A stretch of DNA of 35,228 nt from NCBI RefSeq assembly GCF_000315625.1, contig NW_005434533.1, positions 1 to 35,228 on the forward strand. Direction: 5' to 3'. Shown piece by piece: positions 1-17,985 of the stretch (positions within the stretch are counted from its first letter, which is position 1; the number at the start of each line of letters is the position of its first letter). The notes under the pieces were generated by a model, which was given only the letters and a program-made list of their open reading frames with translations, was not told the origin of the DNA and ran no database searches. The stretch is from Guillardia theta CCMP2712 (taxonomy: Eukaryota; Protista; Cryptophyta). The position numbers and the translations under genes are program-made.

Positions 1-124
1 CCCACCTCTTCCCTCACCCGGCAATCGTCCCTAACGCCTGTCTCCTTGGTGCTAGGCTTGTTTTCCTTCCCTGCCTGTGCTCCATAGGTGGCTTGCCCAT
101 GAGCCGCGCCTGCCCCCCATCGGA

Positions 125-3100
125 CTAGGTCGACTCGCTTCCCCTTCTTGCCGTCCATAGCATGTGTTGCACCACCAGCAGTTGCTTGATTGCTGCTGTC
201 TTGATGCCTTCCCATTCCGTGTCTTCCACCCTTAGCACCCTGAAATTCTCATGCCATTCCCTTTCCATGATCGATCCTTTCACTCCTGCTATGAATGTTG
301 CTTGTTCAACTTCATGATCAGGTAGCAAAGCTGTGATTTCTGCTCGTAGGGGGGCATATTTCTCTTCCTTTTCCTGAAATTTCTTCTTCAGGCATTCCAG
401 GCTTGTTTGTCCGACTCCGTCATATTCCGATGTCCTTGCAAATTCGATGAGGACAATGCGTTTGATGCTTGCAAAGTAGCAGCAACCGTCAGGTATCCAG
501 TGCCCTTCTCGGTGCATTGAAGTCCCCATCGCTTCCATCACGATGCGTATTGGGGTGTCCCACCATGAATTGACCTGTACCCTTTGTTTCCTCCAACTCT
601 GCTGCAGTCTTACCTTGATCTTCTTCATGACTTCATTGTGTGCTTTTTGAATCATATCTTGGAACTGCTTGCACGCTAGCTGAACATGACCCCAGGTTTC
701 TTCTCGATCTGGACAGTGAGGACAACATGGTGAGTTAGTCTTCCCCCATTGAAAGAGCTTCTTCCTCGTCGGTGCTGAGAAGGTGATCGCTTGGATAGCT
801 GTTCGCGTAACTGACCCTTCACATTGTTTGAACCCTCTCCCTAGTAAATCTCTTCCCACATGCATTTCGAGCATGAATTTCTCTGTCAAGGTGAGGTCTC
901 CCGCTCGAATCCTTGCCACCATTGTCTGTTGTCTGATAATGTAGTCCCATTTCTTCAAGCGATCGAATCCTGATGTAGGATTTTCTTCTCCTGCAATGAT
1001 GAATTCCATTGGACTATCGTAGATTGCTTTCTCCCATCCCGAGGCAAATGTTTGTTTTGCTTGCTTGGCCATTTCCTTTGCCTCTTGAATGTTTCTATGA
1101 GATTCTTTTGCTAGTTGGAGTCGGATCCTGATTCCCCTCCCTTCGAGTTTCCTCATGCAAGTGAGTAACCGATCATGTAGGTCCTCCAGCAGTTCGTCTT
1201 CGTATCGCATGGTATCCATTCGCAACGTATTTGTCATAAAGCGGTGGAAACGTGTGGACTGGTACATTATTGTGACTTGATTTCCCCTTTTGATCTGTAT
1301 TCCTTCCTCAAGGACATGTTGCAGAAGTAAACCGATTGCGATTGTGTTCGCTCGGATGATGCTGCACTTCCCATTGATTTTCATCCCTCCTCCTGACGTC
1401 ATCTCTTTTTGTTGGAGAACATATCCTACTCGCATGGATCTGTTTTTTCTGCCCTGCATGATGTCGCCTTCAATAGCTGCTGTGAAATGCCTTCCGCCTT
1501 GATGATCGCTGCACGGCTGGATCTGATCCCTTCGTCTGTTACACAGCTCCTCATACGTTGGGAGGATGTTGTCCTGAAGCTGGACTCGTAAGTATGTTGG
1601 GAGTGTGTGCCTAACTAGTATCCATAACTCCTCTGCAGTCTTCATCAAACACCTATTTCCTGTCTGCCAGAAGTTTGCTGCATAGGCTATTTGAGCGCCT
1701 TTCGGGACCCGGCTGATAATTTCAAAACCTTCTGGTATCTCATCAATGTTATTCTTCCATCCTATCAGAATGACATGTATTGTATCCAGGATTTGTTCAC
1801 GAAATCTCTTTTGTTTGTCCATCCAAACCACCACTCTGTGCAGTTCCCTTGCTCTCTTCTTGTCCAGAGCCTGGGGATGTGTGTGTAGGGTAGGCCAGTT
1901 ACGAAATGTACTGATGTCGCATTCTGTAATCTCCGCTAAATGTTGTAAAAACTCGTATGCCAATGGTTGTGTTGTTTGTTGGCGAACCTCTGATACTACC
2001 TCCTCGAGTTGTTGCCACCATGCTGTAGCTTCTGTTTCGCCGTCGTCCAATGCATTAACTATTTCCAGCAGCAGATGGATGCTTTGATTGCAGTCTCTTC
2101 GGTTATTACCGTCCTCTTCCCTTGTTGCAGATGCGAAGGGAGCCGAGTCCAGTGACGCTTCCAACCATTCTATTGGTGGATCCACAGTCTTGCTTTCTTC
2201 AATTTGAGATCGCTCAAAGATGGCTATGTTCCCTTGAACTTTGAAAGGTATATTGCTTGTAGTGTAACAGAATCTTTCTTGCTGATTCCCTCCTTCACCA
2301 TAACAGGTGGGGTCATGTTGGAGCCACCGCCTCAAATTTACCCGGGTACAAGCCTTCGTATTCGTTTCCTCTCTCCCTTGGTCCGGTCTGGCTAGTTTCT
2401 TGTGTGGCTGAAGTTCATGTGGGCTAGCCTCCCTTTTTCCTTTCCTTCTCTTGTTTAGCGGCTTCCCCTCCTCCCTGGCTGGCCTTCTTCTCTTCCCTGT
2501 TCCTGCCTGCTCAAGTCCGAGTTTGGCCCAGATGACATTCGCTTGCAGATATCGTGCAAGGATTTCTTCTGCTTGTTCCCTTTGCTTTGGGAATGGCCAG
2601 AGTCGGATGGGCAGGTGCAGGGAGATGCCCTCGGTATCCGGGACGGGTAAGACACTTGTCATGGAGTGGAAGCCTACTTGGGGCAGTAGTCTCCATGCCT
2701 TTGCAAAACTCTCCCAGCCTTGCCGAGCAGGAGATGTAGGTAAGGAGTTTTCTCCGGACAGCAGGGAGTTTTCTTCTGAGAGCATCTTGTCCTCCAGGTC
2801 GTGTAAGATGGCTATTGTCCCCGGTTTCATCCTGCTTTCAATCATTTCCCAACTGATGGTGGTCTGCATTTTTTCCGCTATCCAGATTGCGAGTCTTTCC
2901 GGTCCTCTTATCTCTTCGTTCTCTTTGAGTCTGCCCGATCTGATTTCTCGTTGTAGCTGGTTTATTGTTTGACACCCCCATTGGTTGCACCATGATGTTA
3001 GTTTGTGGATCAGACTGCTTTTGATATCATCATCCACCCTGCATTTCTTATTTGTTTCTTTCTCTAGATACCGAATCGCCGCCCTTCCCAAGATGGGTGC

Positions 3101-3643
3101 TGGATGGGGGAGTTGGAGGCCTCCTCTGTCCCCAGGTAGGTGAAAGATAGCGTTGCTTGTACTCTTGCTCAGTCCCATAGCTCTTTTGAATGCTCTGGTC
3201 CAGAGGGTATCTAAGGTTTGTAAGTCTGACCAAGACCAGCTCACCAGTACCGCCGAGTATCTAAAGATATTGACGATGCCTACCTTCACCAGGTAATATT
3301 TTTGGGCTGCCGAGTAAGCAGATGATTCAATCAGCTTTGTCAGTTCTTTTGTCTTCTCCAAGATGTGTTCTTTCTCTCCCCACGTGAAGGGGCAGGTGTG
3401 CGCCTTGTTGCCTCTTCCTCCTGGTCTCCACAAGCTGATCCGGATCCCTAGATATTTGAACCATTTTGTCGGTGGTAGGTTCACAAACTCCTTGTCAAAG
3501 AACTTGATGGTTTGTGTTCCTGGGATCTCCCTCCTTAGCCGATAATCAAAGCTGGTGATTTCAGATTTCTTCGTGTTCAGTTCTAATCCACTCCATCGAC
3601 AGAATCGTTCTACCACTTGAACAAGCGTTTTCATCTCTCTCAC
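125..3643 (-). pseudogene. E1 ORF2, C-terminal part: RT domains 6-7 and thumb, degenerate RNase H, CCHC knuckle, restriction-like endonuclease; separated from the N-terminal part by a frameshift
   Basis: SGLELNTKKSE, FKYLGI, RGGLQLP; CPHC-x4-ETWGHVQLAC; AHN; PDG...LIEFARTSE...KEEKY...FIAGVKG. Confidence 0.85.
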
Positions 3644-6600
3644 TGAATGTCAAGGTCGTCTGCAAATGACAGATTATTAGGGTGTTGAGTTGCAATCTCG
3701 TTTTGTTGATCAAGTTGTCTGGACAAGATGCTGAGCAGAAGATTTGTTTTTGGCGGACTTGCGGGGCTGCCTTGGGGTAATCCTCTGAGAAGTGGGATTG
3801 CTGCTGTATCAAACCTCTCAGTCTGAATTTGCAGAGCTATGCCTTGACTGCAGCTGACTGCGACGTCGACATCGCGCTGGTGGAATCCATATACCTCCAT
3901 GATTTTTGCGATGGATTCAACCGCGACGTTATTGAAGAAGTTGGCAAAGTCGAGGTATAACAGTATAATGTTGTTTTGACTGCTCTGGGCCTCCTCGATG
4001 ATGTTAAGTAGTCTATGACCTTGACGGATCGTCCCGCCCTCGGGTCGGAAACCCTCTTGGTTATCTGTTAGCAGCTTGTGCCTCTCAGCTGCTTTTGCCA
4101 GTCTGTGTGCTATCACCGCTTGGAAGATTCGCGTCACCGACGAGAGGATACATATAGGACGCATATTTTCCAGAACATGACAGAGCTCGTTTTTTGGAAG
4201 GAGTCTGACTCGTGCTAGCATGTTCAACAACGTTTTGTCTCCTGTCAACGCTCTACTGATCACTTTTCCTATCTCCTCCTTTGCGCTGTCAGGTAAAGCT
4301 TTCAGGATCTCGTTTGAGATCAAATCCATGCCTGCTGCCTTGCGATTTGATACTTTTTGAATCCAAATCTGAATTTCTCCTGGCTCCAGGGGAAAAGCAA
4401 TTTCTATTTCCCTGGTCGGGTGTTGATCAATGTTCGTGGGAGAGTTGAATTCCGGTGGTTGGACGGAGGTGAATGATTGACACTGTTTGCAGAAGAAGAG
4501 GATCGTCGTTTCTTCGTTCTTCTGACCTTTGTCATATAGCGGGATCAGTCGTCCTCGTGTTTGACACTCCGCCTTTGCGCAGGTTCCATTCGTCGTGCAG
4601 CCGTTGACTGCGAAGAAGGTTGCCGTGTGGGTTTCATCTTCGAGTTCGCTAGCCAATCTCATAGGGAGAAATTGCTCGATGTTCTTGTATCCTTCTAGGC
4701 GCCACCCTCCTGGTTGTGGGAGCAGTTTCCGAATGATTTGTACAATCAAATGTGCTGGCGCCACGGTGAGGGAGAGCTTCTTTGATGTTTGATTTCCCGC
4801 CCCGAGGACCTCAACTTGCAGTAAGGTTTGATGTTTTGCATTCCAAAAAGTTTTGCTTGATTCTTTGGAGCTGTTTTGCAGGAATGCTTCCATCAGCGGA
4901 TCCAGGTCCTGTAAATACTCTAGCTCTGATTGCTGCAGCGCTGGTTGGAGATCGCTCCATGAGGTGAGTTCGATTGTATTTGGGTGGCATTTCTCTGGCA
5001 GTTGGCTACTCATTGGGGCTTTGGGCTTATAGTCCGATTTCTTCCCCATTGCATTCTGGGACTCTTTACTCCCTATCGTGCCCAGTCGTCTTCGGCGTTC
5101 CTCGCAAGCTTTCAGGAAGGTTTGTTGGTCCTGTTCGGTGCAGATCTCCTTGAATTTGATCATAGTCTCTCTTAGTTCGGCGTTGATACTCGACTCCCTG
5201 TGTGCACGATCAATATAGTCTGTGATTTCTGATGCGCTTCTCAGATCCTTGCGAAGTTGCTTAATCTTCCTTTTCAGGTCCATTTGAATCTTCGATGAGT
5301 ATCGCTTCCCACCTGAGGTTCGTAGGGGGATTTCCTTAATGGGAAGGGCAGTTGTTATCAAATTGATAATGTCGCAATCTTGCTGTAGAGCTTGTGCCGC
5401 TTGTATCTTCTCGTCGAGAGCCATTGCCCATTCCACGCCTAGTCGTCCCGATATCTTTTCTATCTCTACCACCCGCTTCTTTCGTCGAAGAATGGCATCT
5501 CGGTCCTTCCTTTGTGTGAGCATTTCAACCGTTGGAATAAATTGTTCGCCCTTATCATCTAGCGCAGTCACATTCACCACCAGTGCCCTGTGATCGACTG
5601 CGGCTCCTATGATGCAGTCTTCTGCGGTCTCTGATATCAGGCTTACTGTGCGAGATGAATGATGCAGAGCGAAGACATGGTCTAATTTGGCTTGGTGGTG
5701 GCCCTGTTTGTACCATGTGGAGAAGGTGAAATGCGAACTGCTTCTGCTCATCTTTTCGCAGGTGACCATCTGATATCGCCCCAGCTCATTTAAGTTTCGT
5801 TCCATTTCCTCATCTGCGCGGTGCACGTTCGAGTTGATCCCGTACCCTACTCTCGTGCAGATCTCTGCAAGCTTTCGAGATGCGTTGAAGTCGCCTCCGA
5901 CGATGCTGAGCTTAATGTTTGGGTCCATCTTGAGCATCTGGCTCAGCGCCTTCCACATGTTGTCTCGGTCCCTCCCCTCCGATGCGATAGGGAAATGTAC
6001 GTTCGCCAACACTATTGTTTCTTTTTTGCGGCCAACGTGTAAAACCTGTATTCTTTTTTGGGAGACCTCGCGCTCCTCTTCCATGGCGAAGTGCCATGGC
6101 AGGGGGGGGCGAGGTGCAAGGTCAGCATGCGCTAATGTCATGAGGCGTAGGTCACTCTTACCCTTTCTCCCGCCCCCCGTGCCTTTCGTGATAAATACTC
6201 GATAGCATCCCCATTCCTTCTTGATCATCGTTCGGAGAGCTATCTCTTTCCTCCTCCCCCCTACCAAGACCTCCTGCAGCATTACCACGCTCGGCTGGTA
6301 TGTCTCAATCAGGTATCCCAAGATGTGTTTCAGCACAAACTGGCTGCACCCATTAACATTTTGAGAGATGATGTTGCCTGGGGTGTTATCCTTTCTGTGC
6401 ATCTCCACCCATGATGGTTGCTCTGATCTTTCTGTTCGCATTGCATTGTGAGGTTTTCTACCTGTTGTTAGTATTTGTTCCTCTTCCCTATTGGCCCATT
6501 GAAGTTGATGTGGTACTCCCCTTCGATCTCTTGCCGGGGAGTGCGTCTCCTCCTCCTCCCTAGTTCCCCTTACATCGTTCGAAGCTTGTTCTTTGTGCTT

Positions 6601-7728
6601 GCCCACTGGGGGGAGCGATGTGGCCTGCGGCGGTAGTGAGTCCATCTGTTCTGACCTTTCATATGTCCGCAGGTCCGCCATGTTTCTCGCTTGCCACGGT
6701 TCTTGCTCTCCCTGCTCCATCTCTTGTGCCTGGGTCACCTCTGCTGCTTGCCATTCCTTGTACCCTTTATCTTGCGCGTGTTGTAAAGCTCTGCAGATGC
6801 CTTTGATCGTTTCTCGCATGCGCACTTTTCCTGGATCCTCCACCCAAAGCGCATCCAGCAGCCGGTGCCTCATCCTCTCGAGCCATTGCTGGGGTGGGGG
6901 GACGCCTTGCTGCCTACCTGTTTTTGAGATGTCTCGTTGTGTCGGTCTGTTTGTCTTTGCGATCAACAGCAAATGCAACAGTATGAAGATCCCACAGTTG
7001 TGATTGTCTGTTTGTTGTAGCTCAGTTGACAGGTAAACCCGCCATGTCGTTGCATGTTCCTGCTGGTCGCTGAACGCCTCCGTGACAATCGTCGCCGCGA
7101 GTGTGGCTAAGTCCATTCGTTGTGCGCCTTCCAGCTGAAACTGTGCCTCCCTTTGACTTCTGACAATCCCCAAGTCTCTCTCAGCCGTGCTGAGTGAATC
7201 AACAATGCGTATTCTTTTTGTGTCAAAATCTGCCATTAGTAGAATCCAATGATTGCCATTCTCTACGCACGGGAATAAGAATGGCTGGGCTGCCCCGGCT
7301 AGTAGTCGCTTTGCTCTCTTTGTCCTCCCCTCTTGATCTCTCAAACAAGCTACTATTCTCGGGAGGACAATAGTCCCTCTCGGCGACTCGACCTGGTTTC
7401 TAGTTTGCGCGCTCGCGTACCTCTTGTCTCGTAGCCATGCTACTTGAAATCTGTCTTCCAATGGTTCGATACCTTCGCTTGCCTCGAGGATTATCGCCTC
7501 CACAACATCTTCGGAGAGAAAGCCAGCTTCTCCCGAGTTGAGTAGCGCCGCTAATCCATATTCTCTGTTTTGTTCCCTTCGACTCCAGGGGATCTCCCCT
7601 ACTAGGTCGAATGTTTGTGCCGTTTTTTGATTTTCTTTGTCTTTGTTTTTCTCACCTTCTTGTCCTTCCACCTCACCCTTGTGCCAATTGTCCCACCTGC
7701 CCTCGTCTCCTCCTGTTCCTGCGTCCAT
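3640..7728 (-). CDS. E1 ORF2, N-terminal part: Ulp1/C48-type cysteine protease, AP endonuclease, Cys-rich motif, RT domains 0-5
   Basis: NHWILL..D and QQTDNHNCGIF; SQNVNG, MLQE, NVHFP, GGDFN, LDHVF, VDHRAL; KAAGMD, RPICILS, QEGFR, LDFANFFN, RGLPQGSPASP, SFADDL. Confidence 0.92.
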   Translation of the reverse strand: MDAGTGGDEGRWDNWHKGEVEGQEGEKNKDKENQKTAQTFDLVGEIPWSRREQNREYGLAALLNSGEAGFLSEDVVEAIILEASEGIEPLEDRFQVAWLRDKRYASAQTRNQVESPRGTIVLPRIVACLRDQEGRTKRAKRLLAGAAQPFLFPCVENGNHWILLMADFDTKRIRIVDSLSTAERDLGIVRSQREAQFQLEGAQRMDLATLAATIVTEAFSDQQEHATTWRVYLSTELQQTDNHNCGIFILLHLLLIAKTNRPTQRDISKTGRQQGVPPPQQWLERMRHRLLDALWVEDPGKVRMRETIKGICRALQHAQDKGYKEWQAAEVTQAQEMEQGEQEPWQARNMADLRTYERSEQMDSLPPQATSLPPVGKHKEQASNDVRGTREEEETHSPARDRRGVPHQLQWANREEEQILTTGRKPHNAMRTERSEQPSWVEMHRKDNTPGNIISQNVNGCSQFVLKHILGYLIETYQPSVVMLQEVLVGGRRKEIALRTMIKKEWGCYRVFITKGTGGGRKGKSDLRLMTLAHADLAPRPPLPWHFAMEEEREVSQKRIQVLHVGRKKETIVLANVHFPIASEGRDRDNMWKALSQMLKMDPNIKLSIVGGDFNASRKLAEICTRVGYGINSNVHRADEEMERNLNELGRYQMVTCEKMSRSSSHFTFSTWYKQGHHQAKLDHVFALHHSSRTVSLISETAEDCIIGAAVDHRALVVNVTALDDKGEQFIPTVEMLTQRKDRDAILRRKKRVVEIEKISGRLGVEWAMALDEKIQAAQALQQDCDIINLITTALPIKEIPLRTSGGKRYSSKIQMDLKRKIKQLRKDLRSASEITDYIDRAHRESSINAELRETMIKFKEICTEQDQQTFLKACEERRRRLGTIGSKESQNAMGKKSDYKPKAPMSSQLPEKCHPNTIELTSWSDLQPALQQSELEYLQDLDPLMEAFLQNSSKESSKTFWNAKHQTLLQVEVLGAGNQTSKKLSLTVAPAHLIVQIIRKLLPQPGGWRLEGYKNIEQFLPMRLASELEDETHTATFFAVNGCTTNGTCAKAECQTRGRLIPLYDKGQKNEETTILFFCKQCQSFTSVQPPEFNSPTNIDQHPTREIEIAFPLEPGEIQIWIQKVSNRKAAGMDLISNEILKALPDSAKEEIGKVISRALTGDKTLLNMLARVRLLPKNELCHVLENMRPICILSSVTRIFQAVIAHRLAKAAERHKLLTDNQEGFRPEGGTIRQGHRLLNIIEEAQSSQNNIILLYLDFANFFNNVAVESIAKIMEVYGFHQRDVDVAVSCSQGIALQIQTERFDTAAIPLLRGLPQGSPASPPKTNLLLSILSRQLDQQNEIATQHPNNLSFADDLDIQ

Positions 7729-9941
7729 TAAGCTTGTGCCGCAGGGGGGGAGTCTAGTGACATCCCCTCTGCGTCGTCCGCCTTGCTCCCTTCCTCCGGT
7801 TCCTCTTCCATTCCGGCCTCTTTCATCTGTAGTTCAGTGCTCAACATGAACTTTAGTTCGTCGTTATCTCCCAGCATTCCTACCGAAGAGATTACTGTCT
7901 CCTCTAGGAATTTATTCAATGCAATGAAGAGCAGGTCAGTCTTAAACTGCTTCTCTTCTTTGGGGGCAAAAGCGCTTTGCTTGCGCTTCGCGACCTTCCA
8001 TGTATGCTTCTCAACGATTCGTTGGACTCGCTCTTTGAAGCCCTTACTCTGGGTATCCCATGTCGCTCCAGTGCCTTTATCAGCCCATTCTTGCAGCGTG
8101 GAGAAGGACGCGTTGCCTGGACTGTCTAAGGCGACCTGCATGTCGTGCACAGCATCGTCAAGACGAAGTAAGGTCTTTCCTTGCTGTTGTAGGTCATTGT
8201 TAACTACTTCCGCGATAGCTGTCTTGATCTCAGCAATTACTACCTCTGCTTCCGCGTCGGGCAGGTTTGTTTCGTTGATGATTGAGTTCAGTTCAATCTC
8301 TTTCCACACGGTTCCGCCTGCTCTGGTTCCCGGCGTTTGTGATCTGGCTTGGTCAGATTGATCCTGTGTTGCCTGAGGCGACACTTTGAGGTTCAGACTA
8401 CTTGCTGTCGTCTGGATCTCAACTGTGCCTTGCCAGCAGAGAAGGTGTGTGGGGAATTCAGCCATCATCTTTCTTGCACTCCTTTCACTTCGTAGCCTGA
8501 GAATAATTCCAGACCCATCCCACATCCCCGTCTCTGCGTCACATTGGATGTGTACCCGCTGCAGCTCTTTTTCAACCTGTGGGTCCCAGCATGCGACAGA
8601 CCTCCGGATGTTTCGGATGACTTTGGCTCTGCCCGTTTCGTCACTGGCGCAGATTTTTTCAATCTCACTTCGAGAGAACTTCCCTGATGGCACTGGGGAG
8701 GAGATTTGCACTGAGTACAGCATCTCTGCCCCCGTTGCCGTTGCCGCCTCCTGTCGCACAGCATTCTTCGTATGCTTGAGCATAGTCGTTGCTTCCATTT
8801 GAACTGAAAACCATTTCAGTATTTTGTCATTCTCTGAGACCAATCCCAAAGTGACTCCTGCTCGATCTTTTCCATGTCGATCGAATGCCTGGAGGACGAT
8901 GTCCGCTACTTCCAGGCTCGAACAAGTCGCGATCCAGTCTACCTCTCTGTTCTGGTTGACTGTGTCTATTCCTACCGCTGCAAACACCTTCTTTGGCGGC
9001 AGGTTCCTCTTGGGGGGGAGGTTCACTGTCATTCCCGCGTTTGGGATCAGGTCGATAATTGCTAGGCCCTGTTTCAAGCACAACTGCCTGTAGATCTCAC
9101 ATATATCACCTGTACTCGAATCATTGAGCTTAAGGAGTTGGGCCACCTCCGCTAGGATTCCGACTCTGCCCATGTTCTCCTTCTTTGGTCGCATCTTGAA
9201 CGAGATCGGTGGGTTGGCTGCTGGGTTCACTGCTAGGATCCTCCTTCCAGCCACCTTAAAGGTACCTTCTCCTTTCCAGAATTTCTCTGCCGCCTCGTTG
9301 CGGACAAAGGTGATCACTGCTGGGATCTCTTCTGCCTTCGCCAGGTCAGGCTTGAGGGGAGCCTTGAAGATCAAACTCCTGCTGTCTTGCGTCTGATCTA
9401 CGATCAAGCCTTGCTCTTCCAGCTTGACGCATAAGTTTTCAACCTGTCTGGAGAAGTATGCAGGTATCCCTAGTACCTTCATGGTAATCGTCTGCACACT
9501 CGTGCCCTGGTCATCATAAGACCTGGCCTCCATCTGCCGTTGCCTGTCTGCTAGAAATTCGGACAGGTACCACTGCCTGGCATCATCCCCCCACTGCCCG
9601 AGACCTTTCAGACTCTCCAGTGATGAAGGTTCAGCAAAGCTGCATGTGTGACTGATGGCTTCGGCTAAGGCTTCCAAGGATATCTCTTTGGCTTTCAGAG
9701 CTTTGCTCGTCCTGCTTTTGGGATTCTGCCTTGCGAAGTCATCCAGTCGTCGCACAAGCTCAGCTGGTGACGGCATCGTTCCAGTTTCCGTCTGCCTCTT
9801 GAGGTAGCTGGAGGTACGGTACTGCACGATCTCGTCAGGGTTCACAATAGATATTGGCCACATGCTTCGGAGCATTCTCAATGGTTTCCCAAGCTTCCGT
9901 CGTTCCTGGCGGCTCTTACTCCACCAGCGCAGGGGTACCAC
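7728..9941 (-). CDS. E1 ORF1, probable RRM-type nucleic-acid-binding protein (true ATG probably at 9875 or 9776)
   Basis: 737-aa open frame directly upstream of ORF2 with a TAATG overlap; RRM-like pattern ITMKVLGIP...AVITF...FKVAGRRILAV; homologous to the 10664-12807 ORF. Confidence 0.8.
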   Translation of the reverse strand: MVPLRWWSKSRQERRKLGKPLRMLRSMWPISIVNPDEIVQYRTSSYLKRQTETGTMPSPAELVRRLDDFARQNPKSRTSKALKAKEISLEALAEAISHTCSFAEPSSLESLKGLGQWGDDARQWYLSEFLADRQRQMEARSYDDQGTSVQTITMKVLGIPAYFSRQVENLCVKLEEQGLIVDQTQDSRSLIFKAPLKPDLAKAEEIPAVITFVRNEAAEKFWKGEGTFKVAGRRILAVNPAANPPISFKMRPKKENMGRVGILAEVAQLLKLNDSSTGDICEIYRQLCLKQGLAIIDLIPNAGMTVNLPPKRNLPPKKVFAAVGIDTVNQNREVDWIATCSSLEVADIVLQAFDRHGKDRAGVTLGLVSENDKILKWFSVQMEATTMLKHTKNAVRQEAATATGAEMLYSVQISSPVPSGKFSRSEIEKICASDETGRAKVIRNIRRSVACWDPQVEKELQRVHIQCDAETGMWDGSGIILRLRSERSARKMMAEFPTHLLCWQGTVEIQTTASSLNLKVSPQATQDQSDQARSQTPGTRAGGTVWKEIELNSIINETNLPDAEAEVVIAEIKTAIAEVVNNDLQQQGKTLLRLDDAVHDMQVALDSPGNASFSTLQEWADKGTGATWDTQSKGFKERVQRIVEKHTWKVAKRKQSAFAPKEEKQFKTDLLFIALNKFLEETVISSVGMLGDNDELKFMLSTELQMKEAGMEEEPEEGSKADDAEGMSLDSPPAAQA

Positions 9942-9950
9942 AGATCTGCA

Positions 9951-10289
9951 TGCCAGGAAATAAGGAACCTGCCAGGAAATAAGGAACCTGCCAGGAAATA
10001 AGGAACCTGCCAGGAAATAAGGAACCTGCCAGGAAATAAGGAACCTGCCAGGAAATAAGGAACCTGCCAGGAAATAAGGAACCTGCCAGGAAATAAGGAA
10101 CCTGCCAGGAAATAAGGAACCTGCCAGGAAATAAGGAACCTGCCAGGAAATAAGGAACCTGCCAGGAAATAAGGAACCTCCTAAACATAAGGAACCTTAG
10201 GGTTCTAAACCCTAAACCCTAAACCCTAAACCCTAAAGGAAATAAGGAACCTGCCAGGAAATAAGGAACCTGCCAGGAAATAAGGAACC
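9951..10289. repeat. 19-bp tandem repeat TGCCAGGAAATAAGGAACC: 12 perfect copies at 9951-10178 and ~2.7 more at 10238-10289, interleaved with telomeric repeats
   Basis: Directly counted. Confidence 0.97.
10205..10237. repeat. Telomeric tract (CCCTAAA)4+
   Basis: Direct; preceded by an inverted TTAGGGTT at 10197-10204. Confidence 0.95.
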
Positions 10290-10291
10290 TG

Positions 10292-10338
10292 AACCCTAAA
10301 CCCTAAACCCTAAACCCTAAACCCTAAACCCTAAACCC
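10292..10338. repeat. Telomeric tract (CCCTAAA)6+
   Basis: Direct. Confidence 0.97.
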
Positions 10339-10424
10339 GCGCGAGCACTGGGAGTACACGGCCTACAATGCGAACCCTGCTTCTGAGGTCTCTTTCTACT
10401 TTCTACTTCTGCTGTCTTCTCTTG

Positions 10425-10638
10425 GCTTCCTCAGCCTCAGTCAGGAGAGTTGCCTCTCCTCACCTTGGCCTTCGGTCGCCACCTACTCTACCTCCATTCA
10501 GCTTCCTCAGCCTCAGTCAGGAGAGTTGCCTCTCCTCACCTTGGCCTTCGGTCGCCACCTACTCCTCCTCCATTCAGCTTCCTCAGCCTCAGTCAGGAGA
10601 GTTGCCTCTCCTCACCTTGGCCTTCGGTCGCCTCCTAC
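10425..10638. repeat. 76-bp tandem repeat (~2.8 copies) in the E2 3' UTR
   Basis: GCTTCCTCAGCCTCAGTCAGGAGAG... starts at 10425, 10501 and 10577. Confidence 0.93.
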
Positions 10639-10663
10639 CTTCTCTCCTTACCTTGAGCTCAGC

Positions 10664-12807
10664 TCAAGCTCGGTACGGGCTCGCCCCGTCTTCTTCCTCG
10701 CCATCGCCTTGCTCTTCCTCCATGTCTTCCTCTTCTTCGTCATCTTCCCTCATCTCCACCCGCAGTCGGTCCTTCTTGTCCACCTTCAGCGAGCAGGCCA
10801 GCACGTGCATCTCTGCGAATTTACTCAGTGCTATGAACAGGAAGCTAAGAGATCGACGCTCGATGTCGTCGCTCTCCGCCTCCTGCTCAAGCTCAGCAGC
10901 TGCCGTTGCCCGTGGCGAGAACGCGCTGCCCCTCCTTGCCTTCTTGCTCTCTCCTTGCACGCGAGTCCAGCGCTTGCTCTGCAGCCACTTCCCCAGCTTC
11001 TCCTTGAGAACGTTGCGTCCCACTCCCTGCTCCTCTGGCGTCTTCGCCCACTCTCCCAGCGACATGAACTCCAGGCTCCCCGGAGAGTAGAACGTGTCGT
11101 GGAGGTTGCCAACAGCCTTGTCCAGGACCAGCTTGATCGGCTCGCTCGTCCCCGTCTCGTTCAAAGAAGCTGCATCTTCGATGACTGCTGACAGCTCGCT
11201 GACAAGCTGCATGTCCTCTTGGCTTGACGGAGATGCTGCCTCCATTGTGATCCTCTCCAGGTCTGTAAACTCCAGCCACTCTCCCTCGCTCTCCGCCTGT
11301 CGCTGCGCTGCGTCGCTGGTGCCCCGCTGACCAGCCGCCTCAGAGTCAGGCTCCTTGTCGAAGCCGACTGCTTCGAGCTTGGTTGCTGCGCCTTCGAGAT
11401 AGAAGGGCAGCTCCTTCATCATGCGTCGAGCATCCTCCGTGGAGCCGAGGAGGATGCATAGCTTGGACCCGTTCCAGGACTTCGTGTTCAAATCCTCCTC
11501 CATGTCGATGCCTTCAACTTTGATCTCGAGCCTGTTAGCGATCTCCAACAAGACTCTCTTGACTCTTGCGATGGACGTGTTGCCGCCGTTGCACAGCCCC
11601 TCCATCTCCTTCCTCGTGAAGCGACCAGATGCCGCCGTCGACTTGATGATGATCTTGATCTCCTTGCCGTCCTTGCCGCCTGCCTTCTTCTGCATCCTTG
11701 ATGCCTTCTTCAACTTATTTCTGGACACAAAGCGATCAGCTGTCAACTCGACTGCGAGCGCCTCTCTGATCTTCGGGTCCTCGCTGAACAGAGTCAGGTG
11801 TACTCCCTCCATCGCTTCGCTCTCTCGGAAAGCTCGAAATGCTGTATCATTCGCCTCTGGGCAGCTCGAGGAGACGATCCACTCCACCTCCCTCTGTCTC
11901 CAGATGACGTTGGCCCCTACAGCGATGAAGCCTTTCTGACCTAAGCCTTTGTGGACTTGCTGTCCTGGCGCCCCAGCGACCAGCATGCCTGCCAGCGGCT
12001 GGAGTTGGACCGCTGCAAGGGACTGGCGCAGCAGCTGATACCGGTAGACATCAGCAATTTCGGCTGTTGTCATGCCGCCCAAGGTTAGCAGGTGAGTCAG
12101 CTCTGCCAAGCTGCCCCCTTTGCCCCAGGGTCCTCTCTTGGCTCGAATCTTGAAAGATCGATCGTGCACGATGCTCACATGTACAGCTGTGAACTTGCGA
12201 CCATCGATCGCGAAGTCCTCTCTTCCCTGCCAGAGCTTCTCCGCTTGTGCATTGCGGAGGAAGGAAACAGTCACCGGGATCTCCTCAGCACTCGCTATCT
12301 CGGGTCTATACGGAGCCTTCCACATGATTGCTTTACTCTCTTGCACTGAGTCTACGATCAGTCCGATCTCTTCGAATTTCTTCTTCAGCTTTTCTTCATG
12401 GTTGACATACACCGAGGAGATGCCCAGGAGAGTCACGGAGATGAAGGAAGTCACCTCGTTGCCTGCTGAGACGGTGTATGTCTCGACCTTCTCCTTCTTG
12501 GCTTCTTCAATCTGCTGCATAAACCACTCTCAGTGGATGCGTCACTCCATCCAGTCATTGCTTCTTGTAGAAGCTCGCGTCGTGCCTGCTGACATGTCGA
12601 GCGGATGGCTTCTGCGATAGCGTCGGGGGTGCATCCCTCCACAGCCTTGCAAGCCTGAGCTGTCCTGTTAGGAAAACGTTTCGCGAAGCTCTTCACTTTC
12701 TCGACAAGATCAGCTTCGAGGACCGCGGCATCCACAAGCTCGCCCTGCGTGTATTGGCATGATCTCCGATGATACAGGCGCGATGATGTTGCGAACACTT
12801 TCATCAT
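10664..12807 (-). CDS. E2 ORF1 homolog, frameshifted near 12527-12532 (ORF-track frames 12451-12807 and 10664-12520)
   Basis: GLIVDSVQESKAIMWKAPYRPEIASAEEIP aligns with E1 GLIVDQTQDSRSLIFKAPLKPDLAKAEEIP; upstream frame ADLVEKVKSFA..AIAEAIRSTC aligns with E1 AELVRRLDDFA..ALAEAISHTC. Confidence 0.8.
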
Positions 12808-12928
12808 ACTGAAGAACCATACTTAGAAAGCTATTTGAAGTATACAAACCTCTTGCTCGCAGCTTCCTTGGCGCCCTGGCGGCTTCCCCTACACCTGGCA
12901 GGGAGCCATGCTGCCGAAAATAACGGCG

Positions 12929-12961
12929 CCCTAAACCCTAAACCCTAAACCCTAAACCCTA
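12929..12961. repeat. Telomeric tract (CCCTAAA)4 CCCTA
   Basis: Direct. Confidence 0.96.
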
Positions 12962-13357
12962 GAAGCTGTTTCAACTCTACCTAACCCTTGCTCGCAGCTT
13001 CCTCCGGTCCCCTTGCGCTCTCCCTACGCGCCGCAGAGCAGCATGCTTTTACTAAGGCCGGCCTGCTTTTACTAAGGCCGGCCTGCTTTTACTAAGGCCG
13101 GCCTCTGCTTTTACTAAGGCCGGCCTGCTTTTACTAAGGCCGGCCTGCTTTTACTAAGGCCGGCCTCTGCTTTTACTAAGGCCGGCCTCTGCTTTTACTA
13201 AGGCTGGCCTGCTTTTACTAAGGCCGGCCTCTGCTTTTACTAAGCCTGGCCGGCCTGCTTTTACTAAGGCCGGCCTGCTTTTACTAAGGCCGGCCTGCTT
13301 TTACTAAGGCCGGCCTCTGCTTTTACTAAGGCCGGCCTGCTTTTACTAAGGCCGGCC
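12962..13357 (-). mobile_element. E3: 5'-end stub (~100 bp leader plus terminal repeat array) of a third related element
   Basis: CTTGCTCGCAGCTTCC and the following leader are shared with E2 12850-12912. Confidence 0.72.
13044..13357. repeat. 20-bp tandem repeat TGCTTTTACTAAGGCCGGCC, 15 copies, five junctions carrying an extra TC
   Basis: Directly counted. Confidence 0.96.
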
Positions 13358-13359
13358 TA

Positions 13360-13401
13360 TAAACCCTAAACCCTAAACCCTAAACCCTAAACCCTAAACC
13401 C
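13360..13401. repeat. Telomeric tract (CCCTAAA)5+
   Basis: Direct. Confidence 0.96.
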
Positions 13402-13665
13402 TTGGCATCCAGGATTCGATCGCTGTTTCGTTGTTTCTGTGAAGTTTTTCCATAGTCCTCAGTTCCGGGCCGCCCGTGCCGCGCCTCCCCCGGGCCCGGC
13501 TTGACGGTTTCAGTGTGACCGTCTACCTGTCCATTTGTTGCGCTAAGTCCTTGTCCCTTCCCTGCCTGCCGTCTGTGAGGCTTCCCCTTCGGTCTGTCGT
13601 TGACCTTTCCCCTGTCGTCTTCCAACCTCGTTGACCTTTCCCCTGTCAGAGTCGTCTTCCAATTG
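13402..13665 (-). mobile_element. E4: probable 5'-truncated 3'-end fragment of a related element
   Basis: Lies between telomeric tracts; 13529-13615 resembles E1 3' UTR 40-145 (shared CCTTCCCTGCCTG and flanks). Confidence 0.45.
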
Positions 13666-13708
13666 CCCTAAAACCCTAGTAGTAAAACCCTAAACCCTCA
13701 AAACCCTC
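13666..13708. repeat. Degenerate innermost telomeric repeats
   Basis: ccctaaaaccctagtagtaaaaccctaaaccctcaaaaccctc. Confidence 0.85.
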
Positions 13709-13883
13709 TGGACTAAGTTTATATAAGGGGTTGTTTGTGCTTCGCTCGAAAATGCCACGACGTCATGCAGACGGCATAAACAAGGACTTTTCAAGAATTT
13801 AATTTCAGAGCTATGAAAAGAACTTGAGCTCATACTTATCCCATGCATGGAGAAGGCTTTTTAGCCTCCATAGCGAAAGGATT

Positions 13884-15358
13884 ATGATGGAAGAAGGAGC
13901 TGAAATGATTCGTTTGCAAACAAAGCGGAAAGAAGAAGATTATGAAAGAGAGTTTTCAAGATGTTCTTTTCAACCTGCTTTTCTTCCATCTACCTTGCAG
14001 TGTATTGTTGTAATCACCCTACTTCTTTCAATTATCACACTCTCCACTCAATTGAGCAGTCAAATTCAATCATGGTGGATCAGTGCTCTGGAAGGCGGGA
14101 TTCCTGGTGCCGCCGCCATGGTCGTACAGGTTCCTCAGTGCAACTCAAGATTTGCGATCAATAACCTCTGATGTTCTATTCTTCTCTGCAGGTCTTCGCT
14201 CTTCTATGGCTTCGAACCACAATGAACTACCAGTATCGATATGGCGGGAGCATGAAACAGGCGCTGCTGCATCTCTACAGGGAAGGAGGGATCCCAAGAC
14301 TGTATGCTGGGCTTCTTCCTGCTCTGATTCAAGGCGTGCTAACATGATACTTGTTTGTCCCTTGTGTTCTAATGCCTTCACAGGTCCCCTTGCTCGATTT
14401 GGTGACACAGCAGCAAACAACGGCGTACAAACAGCCTTGAGATCGCTCGAAGGCATTCTAAGCATGCCTTTGTGCCTACATCTCACTTGTCGTCTCTCCA
14501 GCAACAAAGGACTGGTCAACTGCAACCGTTTCCCTCGTCTGCTCCCTAGTGGCCGGGTTGTTTCGGATTTTGCTTGTGCCTCTCGAGGTTGTCAAGACGA
14601 CTTTGCAGGTTCCTGAAGCTTAAAATGTGAGTATGCGATTGACAGAGAGGTCAGGTAGAAGGACGGTCCGGGTTTGTTTCTCTATTGAGAAGAGTTTCTC
14701 AACGTGGCTTCTGCTGCTTGTTTGAAGGAGTCCTCGCTACCTTTGCTGCTCACTTCTGTGGTCATTATCCCTGGTTTGCGACTCGCAATTTCCTTACCGG
14801 GTGACGAAAAACTGTAAATCATCATGGTCAATTTGACAATATCTCGTTCCTGTCCGTGCCGTTCAGTATTTGGACGAAATCAGACGATGCACCTTTCAAT
14901 GTTTTCAGGAATGCAGTCATCGGTGAACGAGAAAAACCTGGTTTAAGAGAAGATAATGAATCATGCAGGATTGCTGGCGTCGATTGTAGCAGATACGTTT
15001 TCAAATCCTGCAAGGGTAATCAAAACATACAAACAGGTACTGAATCGTTCGGGTTATTTTTTCATTTTTCATTTTCATCGCTGGCAGACAAGCATGGAGC
15101 AGATAAGTTACCTCAGCGCAATCCAACAAGTTTGTACAGGGATCAAACATCACTCGCTAACTTCATGCAAAGGTGCTGGCGCAAGGAGGCTTCCAAGGAT
15201 TTTTCACTCGGGGGCTGGGAACGAAGGTTTTCTGTAATGCAATACAGGCAAGCTTGTTTGGGAAACACATATTTCTGACATCTCTTCAAAAGTCAATGTT
15301 TTTCAACATCACCTGGGAGCTCTTCCAAGAGAAATACAAACTTCTAAGATCTGCCTAG
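13884..15358 (+). CDS. Mitochondrial carrier-like protein, multi-exon (start uncertain)
   Basis: Spliced: [89 protein letters not shown]. Confidence 0.8.
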
Positions 15359-16518
15359 ATTGCATTTTGCAGAACCAAATCTACTGTTCGCTGTGCAAAA
15401 AAAGTGTGACGTCAAAGGAGATATGCGGACAATACAACTCAGACCGGATGTGTTTTTAAAACAAAAAGTTCTACTCTCTACGCTGTCATTATGCAAAGGC
15501 AAAGGCCATGTGCTCGGATGTGACTCTGATTCTACAGAAGAAATACCAAGAAGTCTCACTGAATCGTCGCTCAGTTTGTAATAATCGCTTCCATGACCCA
15601 TCGGTCTCTGCTTCTCCAAAACGATAAACCCACAGTTTGGCAAATTTTTGCTAAGCATGAATGTTTCGGGAGACCAGTGCAACCATCGCATGGCGAAGAG
15701 CCTGACAGCTAACCCGTGACTGACAATCAGAACAACTCCATTCTCGACGTCATGTTGACATTGAAAAACTCTCCACAGAGAGTCAATGAACAAGGAAATT
15801 CTATCGTAGACATCTGCACATGATTCTCCACCTGGAGGCCTCCAAAAGAATCTCGAATAGGAGTCTTCGTCGCTGCGATCTGGTGCATTCCGTTGAAAGC
15901 TTCCACTAAATTCCCTCTCGCGGATCCGAGGGTCTTCATGGTTGTAGAGAACTTTGACATTTGATTTTGAAAGCTCAGACAGAACTATCGAAGCAGTCTG
16001 CCTCGTCCTCACATACGGTGAGCTGAAACTAAAAACTGGTCGTTTGCCGATGATTTTTCGAAGAATGCCGGTTGCTTGGACTGCCTGCATGACTGATTAG
16101 CAACAATGAGGTCAGCCACATGCAAAAGGCGTCAAATAATGAATAACATAGACCTGTTGGACTCCTTCTTTGGTAAGTTGTATGTTTGGATCACCAACTG
16201 ATGCATATTTCTCAGGATTTACGTTCGCTTCTGACTCTCCATGCCTCATTAAAATGATAAGATCTGCTTCAGGCATCAGAACATGACATTCATCGTCAAC
16301 CATTGGATACCTGGTTTATGATAACGTTTCTGATGAGCGATTCTCTTTTCAAGCTTGAGAATCCTTCTCCAAAGCATGTAGGAAATCAGGAGCGTGCCGG
16401 TGCAAAAAGCATTCCGAGCCCACGGAAACAAAGCTTCGAAACTTTTCGAAGGAAGGAGAAACAATTGGTTGACAGAGATAGAGGAGAGGAGGCGGTAAGG
16501 GTCGAGGAGCGTGAGCAT
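15344..16518 (-). CDS. Histidine phosphatase / phosphoglycerate mutase-like protein (Det1/AT74-like), multi-exon
   Basis: LMRHGESEAN, SSPYVRTRQT, DPRIRERE, GGESCADVYDR, VSHG motifs. Confidence 0.88.
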
Positions 16519-17059
16519 GTTTCTCAGGGATCCATGAGTGTAGCTATGACAAGAGCTGATCGCATTCCAAACCACGTCCCCTATACTTGGGTTTTTATTC
16601 AAGTTACTCAACGTTGTTCCCCGCCGCGGCCGGGCCCGGCGCCGCCCGGGCCTGGGGCCGCCCGGCCGGCCGCCGGCGGGGCCCCCGGCCCGGTAGGACG
16701 GTATCGTCCTGACGGTACGCCGCCCGGCCCAGTACGCTCGGGGAGTCAGAGTCGCCGTGCCAGGCCGCGGGCTGTGCCGCGCCGGGCACTGGCTGGCACG
16801 CCGGCTAGCCTAGTAGTCACTCTGAGCCGGAGTAAACCGGTACGGTCGCTGACGGTTCCAAGTTCCTAAAGTCCCTTCGGATCGCCTAAACATTGAACGA
16901 TATTGAACGTGAGTGATGCTTGTATTATAGACTAAGTTACGACTTACTAACGGCGGCGTGCCGCGTGAAAAGATCAGTCGCGGCAGTACTCAGTGATGCC
17001 GGACTGGAAGCCTCGAACCGTGAACCGTTTGGAACTGCCGCAGTGCCATGATCCAATGA

Positions 17060-17985
17060 TTAAAAGACGTAGACATTGTGGCCTGTCGTTAAGTCTTCCT
17101 TGGTATCATGCGATGATAAACAACGAGCTCGCCATGAAGCAATAATTGCCTTGTCTTCCCAATCATGCGTCATCGCTGGCTTCTCATTCTTATTATCGTG
17201 GAACTCTTCGGCGGTCGCAGATTTGTCTTCTTTCTGCAGCTTGTCTGTCTTCGAACCCAGCAGCTCCACAAACGCTGAGTCCAGTATGCCTTGCAAGTCC
17301 ATGCTAGACGCGCGATGATCCGCAGAATACATGTTATGCTTGTCTTCGCTATTTCTGAAGGAGTTGCTACCCCAGCTGAACGGAAAATTCAGCAGTGAAG
17401 ACAATGATGACTCGGAGTCCACGTGCTCTTGAGGACTCATTGTAAGAGACTCGAAGCTTGGGGCTGCGATAGACTGTTGCTCTGTCTCATCGAGGTGAAG
17501 CATGGGGTTCCTACGTCTTGAATCGGACTTTTTGATATGTCGCTTCGGTTTTGTTTGTTCAGAAACTGTGTCTTTGATGTTCGGTCGATGACTTGCGAGA
17601 TTTTCTTCATCGTCTTGCTCTTCATGACTTTGTGAAGTTGTTTTCTCTTGTTCTGGATTGCTCTTTGCATCAGAATATTGTTTTTCAGCTTTGAGCCATT
17701 CATGGACTTTAATCATGGAATGTTTCTCTTCGGCCGATAACTGATTGTAGCGCATGATTTGACTGAGAGAGTTTCAAGGGTGGGATCGACGGGAGATAGA
17801 GGTAGTTGTGTGATGTGATGGTGGCGGAGCCTTAGAGCCTTTAAACAGGAAAAGAGGTGGAAAGGGCGATGACCCAGGCAAGGAGGGGTCATATGAGCCT
17901 GTTTGTCCAGGTGAAATGATCTGTTCGACTCGTGCAGTCCTGAAGTACACGATAAGAAGTCTTTTCGACTGTCATCGAGGTTCAA
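17060..17985 (-). CDS. Hypothetical protein (5' exons unresolved)
   Basis: 231-aa hydrophilic open frame at 17060-17755 with a plausible upstream exon; no recognised domain. Confidence 0.5.

Follow-up and report, generated by a model that had tools for sequence, protein, structure and literature searches.

Telomere-specific retrotransposons are known from only a few lineages (insects, Giardia, Chlorella and Magnaporthe), and they have been central to ideas on the relationship between retroelements and telomerase. The elements considered here appear, from their predicted proteins, to be allied to another group of retrotransposons that lack long terminal repeats (non-LTR retrotransposons), Dualen, in which a C48 protease, an APE-type endonuclease, a reverse transcriptase (RT), RNase H (RNH), a CCHC zinc knuckle and a restriction-like endonuclease (RLE) have been described together from cryptophytes (Dualen-1_GCr as well as Dualen-5_CCu; Lescot et al. 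2016, PMC5029228). Because of these published elements, Dualen is not confined to green algae, from which an earlier reading of the present DNA (the original prediction) had cited it, and the domain set is not new. Here, we analyse a stretch of 35,228 nucleotides (nt), the window, with which contig C141 of Guillardia theta CCMP2712 begins (genome 87.1 Mb, 669 contigs). Positions 1-13708 of C141 consist of co-oriented pieces of non-LTR retrotransposons with short telomere-repeat tracts between them. The reading that we favour, with a probability of about 0.82, is that this region is the inner part of a chromosome-end array, built by related elements that insert specifically into the telomere repeat, in alternation with erosion and healing by telomerase.

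Layout and genome-wide location of the array

The plus strand of the window is the C-rich strand, as expected for the left end of a chromosome, and all long open reading frames (ORFs) and coding potential of the array lie on the minus strand, which is the G-rich one. A pattern search for the telomere-type 7-nt motif gave 18 matches, against 0 expected by chance. The outermost piece is E1, an element that encodes RT and whose parts are listed in a later section; the rest of the array, which includes pieces of untranslated regions (UTRs), is as follows.

10205-10237, no strand: telomere tract, 4.7 units
10238-10291, minus strand: stub of E1-type 5' repeats, 54 nt, 2.5 units, a 3'-truncated remnant
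10288-10338, no strand: telomere tract, 7.3 units
10339-12928, minus strand: E2, an ORF1-only element
12929-12961, no strand: telomere tract, 4.7 units
12962-13360, minus strand: E3, a 5' stub of an E2-like family
13360-13402, no strand: telomere tract, 6.1 units
13403-~13660, minus strand: E4, a fragment from inside a fourth family's 3' UTR
~13661-13708, no strand: degenerate telomere-like repeats bordering unique DNA

The original prediction had described co-oriented pieces with tracts between them and host genes beyond, and the tract positions, the minus-strand ORFs and the DNA from 13750 onward (13750-17750 is single copy in the genome) bear this out. Its four segments are all real, but a fifth piece, the small stub of 19-nt repeats between two tracts, had been overlooked. 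E1 and E2 (homologous ORF1) and E3 (from an E2-like family) are related, and E4 turns out to be a 3'-UTR fragment of a fourth family and not a 5' piece. The stubs that it noted are present too, yet they are not ordinary 5'-truncated copies of long interspersed nuclear elements (LINEs) but 3'-truncated pieces capped by telomere repeats.

Copies of these elements elsewhere in the genome were mapped on contigs sorted by size, the lengths of some contigs being bounded from the sort order. Plus-strand matches to E2 start within 22 kb of the contig start in 31 of 32 cases, and the minus-strand ones lie near contig ends. On contigs of known length, including contigs of 0.3-1.3 Mb, all E1 matches fall within ~31 kb of an end, and ~27 of 30 E1 matches have the telomere-consistent orientation, with the 3' end outward. 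Probes from the E1 3' end, E3 and E4 are likewise confined to the neighbourhood of contig ends. The enrichment at chromosome ends that had been proposed is thus seen on the contigs for nearly all copies of E1 to E4, and the terminal location, the flanking tracts and the constant 3' register described below agree, with few exceptions, with the proposal of a telomere-specialised family that builds the subtelomere.

Could insertion instead be unspecific, with copies persisting only at the ends because selection purges all others from a gene-dense genome? Some LINEs are generally known to accumulate in gene-poor regions for such a reason. Selection alone, however, cannot yield full-length copies that have telomere repeats on both sides, one orientation and one 3' register, and we consider this explanation very improbable. 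A different concern is that the array might be an assembly chimera of repeated reads, given that the scaffold assembly is an older one, has N gaps and contains many contigs that end inside elements. The same order of parts nonetheless recurs at dozens of contig ends, and three assemblies made from other data (L021 and L022 from JGI, L039 from ENA) contain complete elements flanked by tracts; L039 runs through a tract, E2, a tract, 5' repeats, E1, a tract and the next 5' repeats. Because these three independent assemblies show the same array, an artefact is so very unlikely as to be scarcely credible, and the array can be taken as real, as first proposed.

The array passes into unique DNA through degenerate telomere-like units that span ~50 nt, and a classical subtelomeric satellite is absent there. 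The first host ORFs begin within ~1.5 kb of the boundary, and the host domains found past the array are His_Phos_1, Peptidase_M13 and TrmO. Two arrangements at other contigs may be mentioned beside these. At L018:760-775 (right end of G000:C149), an E1 stub cut inside ORF1 is fused straight to an E2-type 5' end without a tract, a rare configuration. At L007:6285-9746 (G000:C90), a Gypsy-type LTR pol gene (RT, RNase H, integrase) adjoins a 5'-truncated E1 near the contig start, so other classes of element also occur in the terminal arrays.

Junction registers and the origin of the arrays

A survey of 43 distinct tracts separates the junctions into two classes. All 17 of the intact 3' tails (10 of ATA type and 7 of TAC type) meet the tract in one and the same register. 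Ends broken inside an element number 18, and the tracts that follow them begin in all seven registers; the 19-mer stub, E2, E3 and E4 of the window all belong to this truncated, variable-register class. The single-register class fits target-primed reverse transcription from a fixed nick in the C strand, which would most simply lie between CCC and TAAA, a position that suits both tail types if a 2-nt ambiguity is allowed. The variable-register class fits de novo addition of repeats to ends broken at random. Most 5' junctions come after ...TTAGG, a tentative sign of a cut in the G strand 2 bp from that in the C strand. The orientation of the elements is obtainable only by a C-strand nick and not by priming on the chromosome tip; the original prediction had argued as much from the sense strand being the G-rich strand, and all pieces are indeed co-oriented in that way. 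The genome also encodes a telomerase RNA-binding domain (RBD), found as a single match (51 bits) at C21:562211-562372, which is likely to be the G. theta TERT gene.

How would insertion of this kind produce an array of truncated pieces? Target-primed reverse transcription would start at a nick at a fixed position of the repeat in the C-rich strand, which would put the sense strand on the G-rich strand and the 3' tail toward the chromosome tip. Upon loss of the distal tract, elements would erode from the 3' end, because it is this end that faces outward; telomerase would then add fresh repeats onto the broken end, and the next element would insert into the newly added tract. At least four such rounds of insertion, erosion and healing would be recorded in the window, with the stub, E2, E3 and E4 each having formerly lain near the tip, lost its 3' end, been healed and received the next insertion. 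We infer the succession of erosion and then healing, like the nick position, from the junctions.

The capped 3'-truncated pieces might alternatively arise from internal priming on truncated RNA, from deletion of target DNA at the next insertion or from unequal exchange between tracts. LINE integration is generally known to be capable of deleting target DNA, and the L018 junction, in which an E1 stub meets an E2 5' end with no tract, would be readily accommodated. Internal priming at a fixed nick would, however, keep a single register, while the 18 truncated ends precede real tracts in all seven, as repeat addition at random breaks predicts. Moreover, telomerase is encoded, and the outward 3' ends are what erosion would remove. 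An origin of the truncated pieces by such routes is therefore unlikely, if still deserving of some weight, and erosion followed by healing is preferred.

Several observations weigh against the insertion, erosion and healing reading or blur it. In a target made of tandem repeats, the position of the nick can be fixed only to within 2 nt for the ATA and TAC tails. A few copies are inverted (pieces in C154, C72 and C321) or joined without a tract (the L018 junction), and small fragments of E1 may be interstitial (C39:334797). Most contigs stop short of a long terminal tract; the contig end is a proxy for the chromosome end. For RNase H, which belongs to the Dualen set as published, neither Pfam nor BLAST gave a signal in residues 2050-2360 of P0003, an intact homologue of the E1 ORF2 protein. 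Finally, some arrangements of a stub plus E2 recur at several ends, so exchange between ends also spreads the arrays.

Perhaps, then, the arrays spread mostly by recombination or segmental duplication between ends, with retrotransposition into telomere repeats being rare or ancient. The neighbour pair of an E4-family 3' end followed by E2 does recur at several loci, and subtelomeres are generally known to swap sequence in many eukaryotes. On this view it is difficult to see why E2 copies that are 96-97% identical should have different neighbours, tract lengths and numbers of 5' repeats. The 17 intact 3' junctions, constant in register, suggest that one enzymatic event has taken place repeatedly, and intact copies of ORF2 exist. 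Exchange as the main source of the arrays is thus quite unlikely, and we retain repeated insertion into the telomere repeat as their origin.

The RT-encoding element and its partners

Elements of the E1 family are ~10.6 kb long, with two ORFs that meet in a TAATG stop/start overlap. The parts of the copy in the window are the following.

1-124, minus strand: 3' UTR, partial; the contig start falls inside the element
125-7728, minus strand: ORF2, ~2534 codons, with one frameshift
128-850, minus strand: CCHC zinc knuckle and RLE at the ORF2 C-terminus, with PD, E and K..KY motifs
3437-4197, minus strand: RT domain, split by the frameshift
3640-3655, minus strand: 10-bp deletion right after the FADD motif of RT
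5494-6336, minus strand: APE-type endonuclease domain, N-terminal to RT
6934-7275, minus strand: Ulp1/C48 cysteine protease, with visible H, D and C motifs
7726-7730, minus strand: TAATG overlap, with a single base common to the ORF1 stop and the ORF2 start
7728-9878, minus strand: ORF1, ~716 amino acids (aa) from the first ATG
9951-10204, minus strand: 5' terminal tandem repeats, 19-nt unit, ~13 copies

ORF2 thus carries, in order, a C48 protease, APE, RT and CCHC plus RLE. The protease scores 24-30 bits with PF02902, against a Pfam cut-off of 20.7. For the APE domain the Pfam match is weak (Exo_endo_phos, E 5e-4), and a profile of seven family members matches human L1 endonuclease structures over the full domain (E 3e-11). 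RT matches RVT_1 (E 2.4e-17), with the match continuing in the next frame, as well as the structures of R2 and L1 ORF2p. A profile of the CCHC and RLE region matches R2 proteins (E 2.7e-15), and there is conservation in the C, C, H, C, PD and E columns of its alignment; the AlphaFold model has a pLDDT of 90, and its top seven Foldseek matches are all R2 (TM 0.66-0.70). The TAATG overlap is conserved in three diverged copies (window, L021 and L022), and the gene calls for ORF1 and ORF2 overlap by 1 nt in L021, L022 and L039. The ORF1 product has no known domain in Pfam or the ESM Atlas, and its predicted fold has a pLDDT of 40 (10-row alignment).

The copy of E1 in the window is dead. Its frame is shifted because of the 10-bp deletion after FADD, which among the copies compared is common to this one and the C486 copy only. 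It also has no true 3' end: other copies run past window position 35, and complete 3' ends (L021, L022, L039 and L005) carry an AATAAA signal and then an ATA/AAT trinucleotide tail that abuts the tract. Intact copies of ORF2 are present within the G. theta genome (L007 and L013), and intact homologues of 2573-2575 aa are found in other assemblies (P0003, P0004 and P0157). The original prediction of an autonomous element with two endonucleases accordingly holds for the family, whose ORF2 has both APE and RLE, but not for the copy on which it was based, defective in RT and cut by the contig start.

A search for RT relatives among 1.8 billion representatives placed E1 closest to long proteins with APE before RT and RLE after it, some of which also carry C48, SET or RNase H; the 10 best long RT relatives all have APE and RLE. 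This architecture agrees with that of Dualen-1_GCr (PMC5029228). Judged by these proteins, E1 would be a two-ORF member of the cryptophyte Dualen group. RNase H is present in the relatives P0012 and P0017, and E1 may have a degenerate version or have lost it. Outside the genome, ORF2 has its closest relative in a Hanusia phi transcript (54% identity), and small assemblies from at least five studies, guessed to be RNA, contain 62-68% of E2 words; as to expression, this transcript and the presumed RNA assemblies are hints only.

A more distant Dualen relative, P0012 (C48, APE, RT, RNase H and RLE), lies at L042:1-10607 with an upstream ORF that overlaps the ORF2 start by 4 nt, and a second Dualen ORF stands nearby in the opposite orientation (L042:13362-16607). 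The two-ORF layout may be common in the Dualen group. No similarity was found between ORF1 of E1 and the upstream ORF of this relative. The available contigs of the distant relatives L040-L042 contain no 7-nt tracts, which is weak evidence considering that these contigs are short; given these tract-free contigs, telomere targeting may be limited to the lineage of E1.

E2 belongs to a family of ~2.6-2.7 kb with at least 40 near-full copies, 96-97% identical, and no ORF2. Such a number of near-full copies marks E2 as a genuine ORF1-only family rather than an isolated deletion, which confirms the ORF1-only partner that had been proposed; at contig ends E2 outnumbers E1, whose copies are fewer and mostly partial. 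Two features of the copy in the window need to be added to the list above.

10425-10638, minus strand: 76-nt tandem repeats in the E2 3' UTR; L039 has the same unit
10664-12807, minus strand: E2 ORF1, split into 618 aa and an upstream 118-aa frame

The split is due to a private 2-nt insertion at 12532-12533, and intact copies encode ~713 aa. Over 579 aa, the E2 ORF shares 30% identity with ORF1 of E1 (E 1e-67). The copy of E2 in the window is without the last ~105 nt of the family 3' end, including the AATAAA signal and the ATA tail, and full E2 3' ends are present in L018, L003, L012 and L011. E3 comprises the first ~400 nt of its element, namely 20-nt 5' repeats (13044-13358) and 85 nt of 5' UTR, the remainder being absent; the ORF1 of its family, reached in other copies, is 58-64% identical to that of E2. 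E4 stops ~130 nt short of its family's 3' end, which in intact copies carries an AATAAA signal and a (TAC)n tail, and the E4 repeat occurs at 16 places near contig ends.

How could elements without RT be copied? E1 and E2 have a common terminal motif, TCTAATAAACTCA(A/C)ATA, and a terminal motif around TCTAATAAA is common to E1, E2 and the E4 family, with E1 and E2 sharing ~20 nt. Such shared 3' ends are expected of partners copied by the same RT. E2 and the E3 family, which have retained just an ORF1 and the final ~20 nt at the 3' end, are probably copied in trans by the ORF2 protein of E1.

Each 3' UTR contains tandem repeats, with units of 76 nt in E2, ~80 nt in the E4 family and ~65 nt in E1 (L030-L038; starts of L005, L009 and L020). 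All families begin with tandem repeats of a 17-23-nt unit, in a copy number that varies from 1 to more than 15; besides the window (9951-10291 and 13044-13358), such repeats are found in L002, L006, L012, L021, L022, L025, L030 and L039. Each unit has a GC-rich and often palindromic hexamer first (GGATCC, GGCGCC, GGCCGGCC or GGTTCC), then a T-rich middle and a GGCA end. These 5' repeats could be a promoter, a protein-binding module or a product of slippage at the 5' end.

Comparison with known telomere-associated elements

Full-text literature searches, with Repbase reports outside the search, returned no description of a telomere-specific Dualen element or of a telomeric retrotransposon of Guillardia, and the family was not already catalogued as telomeric within that literature. 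The elements live in an alga that is grown in culture as a model and whose genome is public, and there their proteins still bear the annotation 'hypothetical'. With a 7-bp repeat as its defined target, the system is a natural one for asking what each Dualen endonuclease does, and with its outward 3' ends the array is readable as a record of past erosion and healing of chromosome ends. A wider proposal, which we put forward tentatively and think rather unlikely, is that most or all ends of G. theta, and probably of related cryptophytes, are composite telomeres, in which a two-component system derived from Dualen plays a regular and possibly beneficial part in end maintenance beside telomerase. 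The ORF1-only family would then be a targeting partner like HeT-A, and the two endonucleases would divide between them the C-strand and G-strand cuts, 2 bp apart.

Dualen elements of cryptophytes, and Dualen/RandI of Chlamydomonas, reportedly described by Kojima and Fujiwara in 2005, resemble E1 in having C48, APE, RT, CCHC and RLE in one polyprotein. For these elements, which were described from transcripts or from copies scattered in the genome, a target preference is not reported; the active Dualen-4b of Chlamydomonas inserts throughout the genome and makes long target duplications (PMC9977147). E1 differs in its separate ORF1 with a stop/start overlap, its strict targeting of telomere repeats, its ORF1-only partners and its undetected RNase H.

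In its mode of action E1 resembles the R1-clade elements SART1 and TRAS1 of Bombyx mori. As in E1, the sense strand of SART1 is the G-rich one, and ORF1 and ORF2 of SART1 overlap in UAAUG; no ORF1-only partner is known for SART1 or TRAS1. Both encode just one endonuclease, APE, and their tails are poly(A), whereas the E1 system has ATA or TAC trinucleotide tails and an additional endonuclease of R2 type. The common ground is endonuclease-dependent insertion, in a fixed orientation, into repeats made by telomerase (PMC7265360 for targeting). As in that class, the tracts are terminal and the elements lie in one orientation, with few exceptions, and the 3' junction is constant. Membership of the R1 clade is ruled out by the Dualen-type domain set and the nearest relatives; E1 works like SART1 only.

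The original prediction had drawn a parallel with HeT-A and TART of Drosophila. With HeT-A, TART and TAHRE the Guillardia system shares a Gag-only or ORF1-only element that is commoner than its RT-encoding partner, and head-to-tail arrays at chromosome ends shaped by terminal erosion. The Drosophila elements, however, have the 3' end proximal, attach to the tip, need no endonuclease and have replaced telomerase, while in the Guillardia array the elements have distal 3' ends and encode two endonucleases, in a genome with telomerase repeats and a probable TERT gene. Attachment to the tip in the manner of HeT-A and TART is ruled out by the distal 3' ends, the two endonucleases and the TERT RBD. 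The parallel therefore holds for the function and abundance of an ORF1-only partner and fails for orientation, endonucleases and telomerase; the pairing is as in Drosophila, yet alongside telomerase.

Other microbial eukaryotes also have non-LTR elements in or next to telomere repeats, namely Zepp in Chlorella, MoTeR in Magnaporthe and GilM/GilT in Giardia. The MoTeRs use RLE and include a partner without RT (PMC7367193). Zepp is L1-like, MoTeR is CRE-like and GilM/GilT are specific to Giardia, and none of them combines APE and RLE. The Guillardia elements would add an independent origin of telomere-specific retrotransposons to these, in a different eukaryotic supergroup and from a different group of LINEs, Dualen being the only such group that carries both types of endonuclease.

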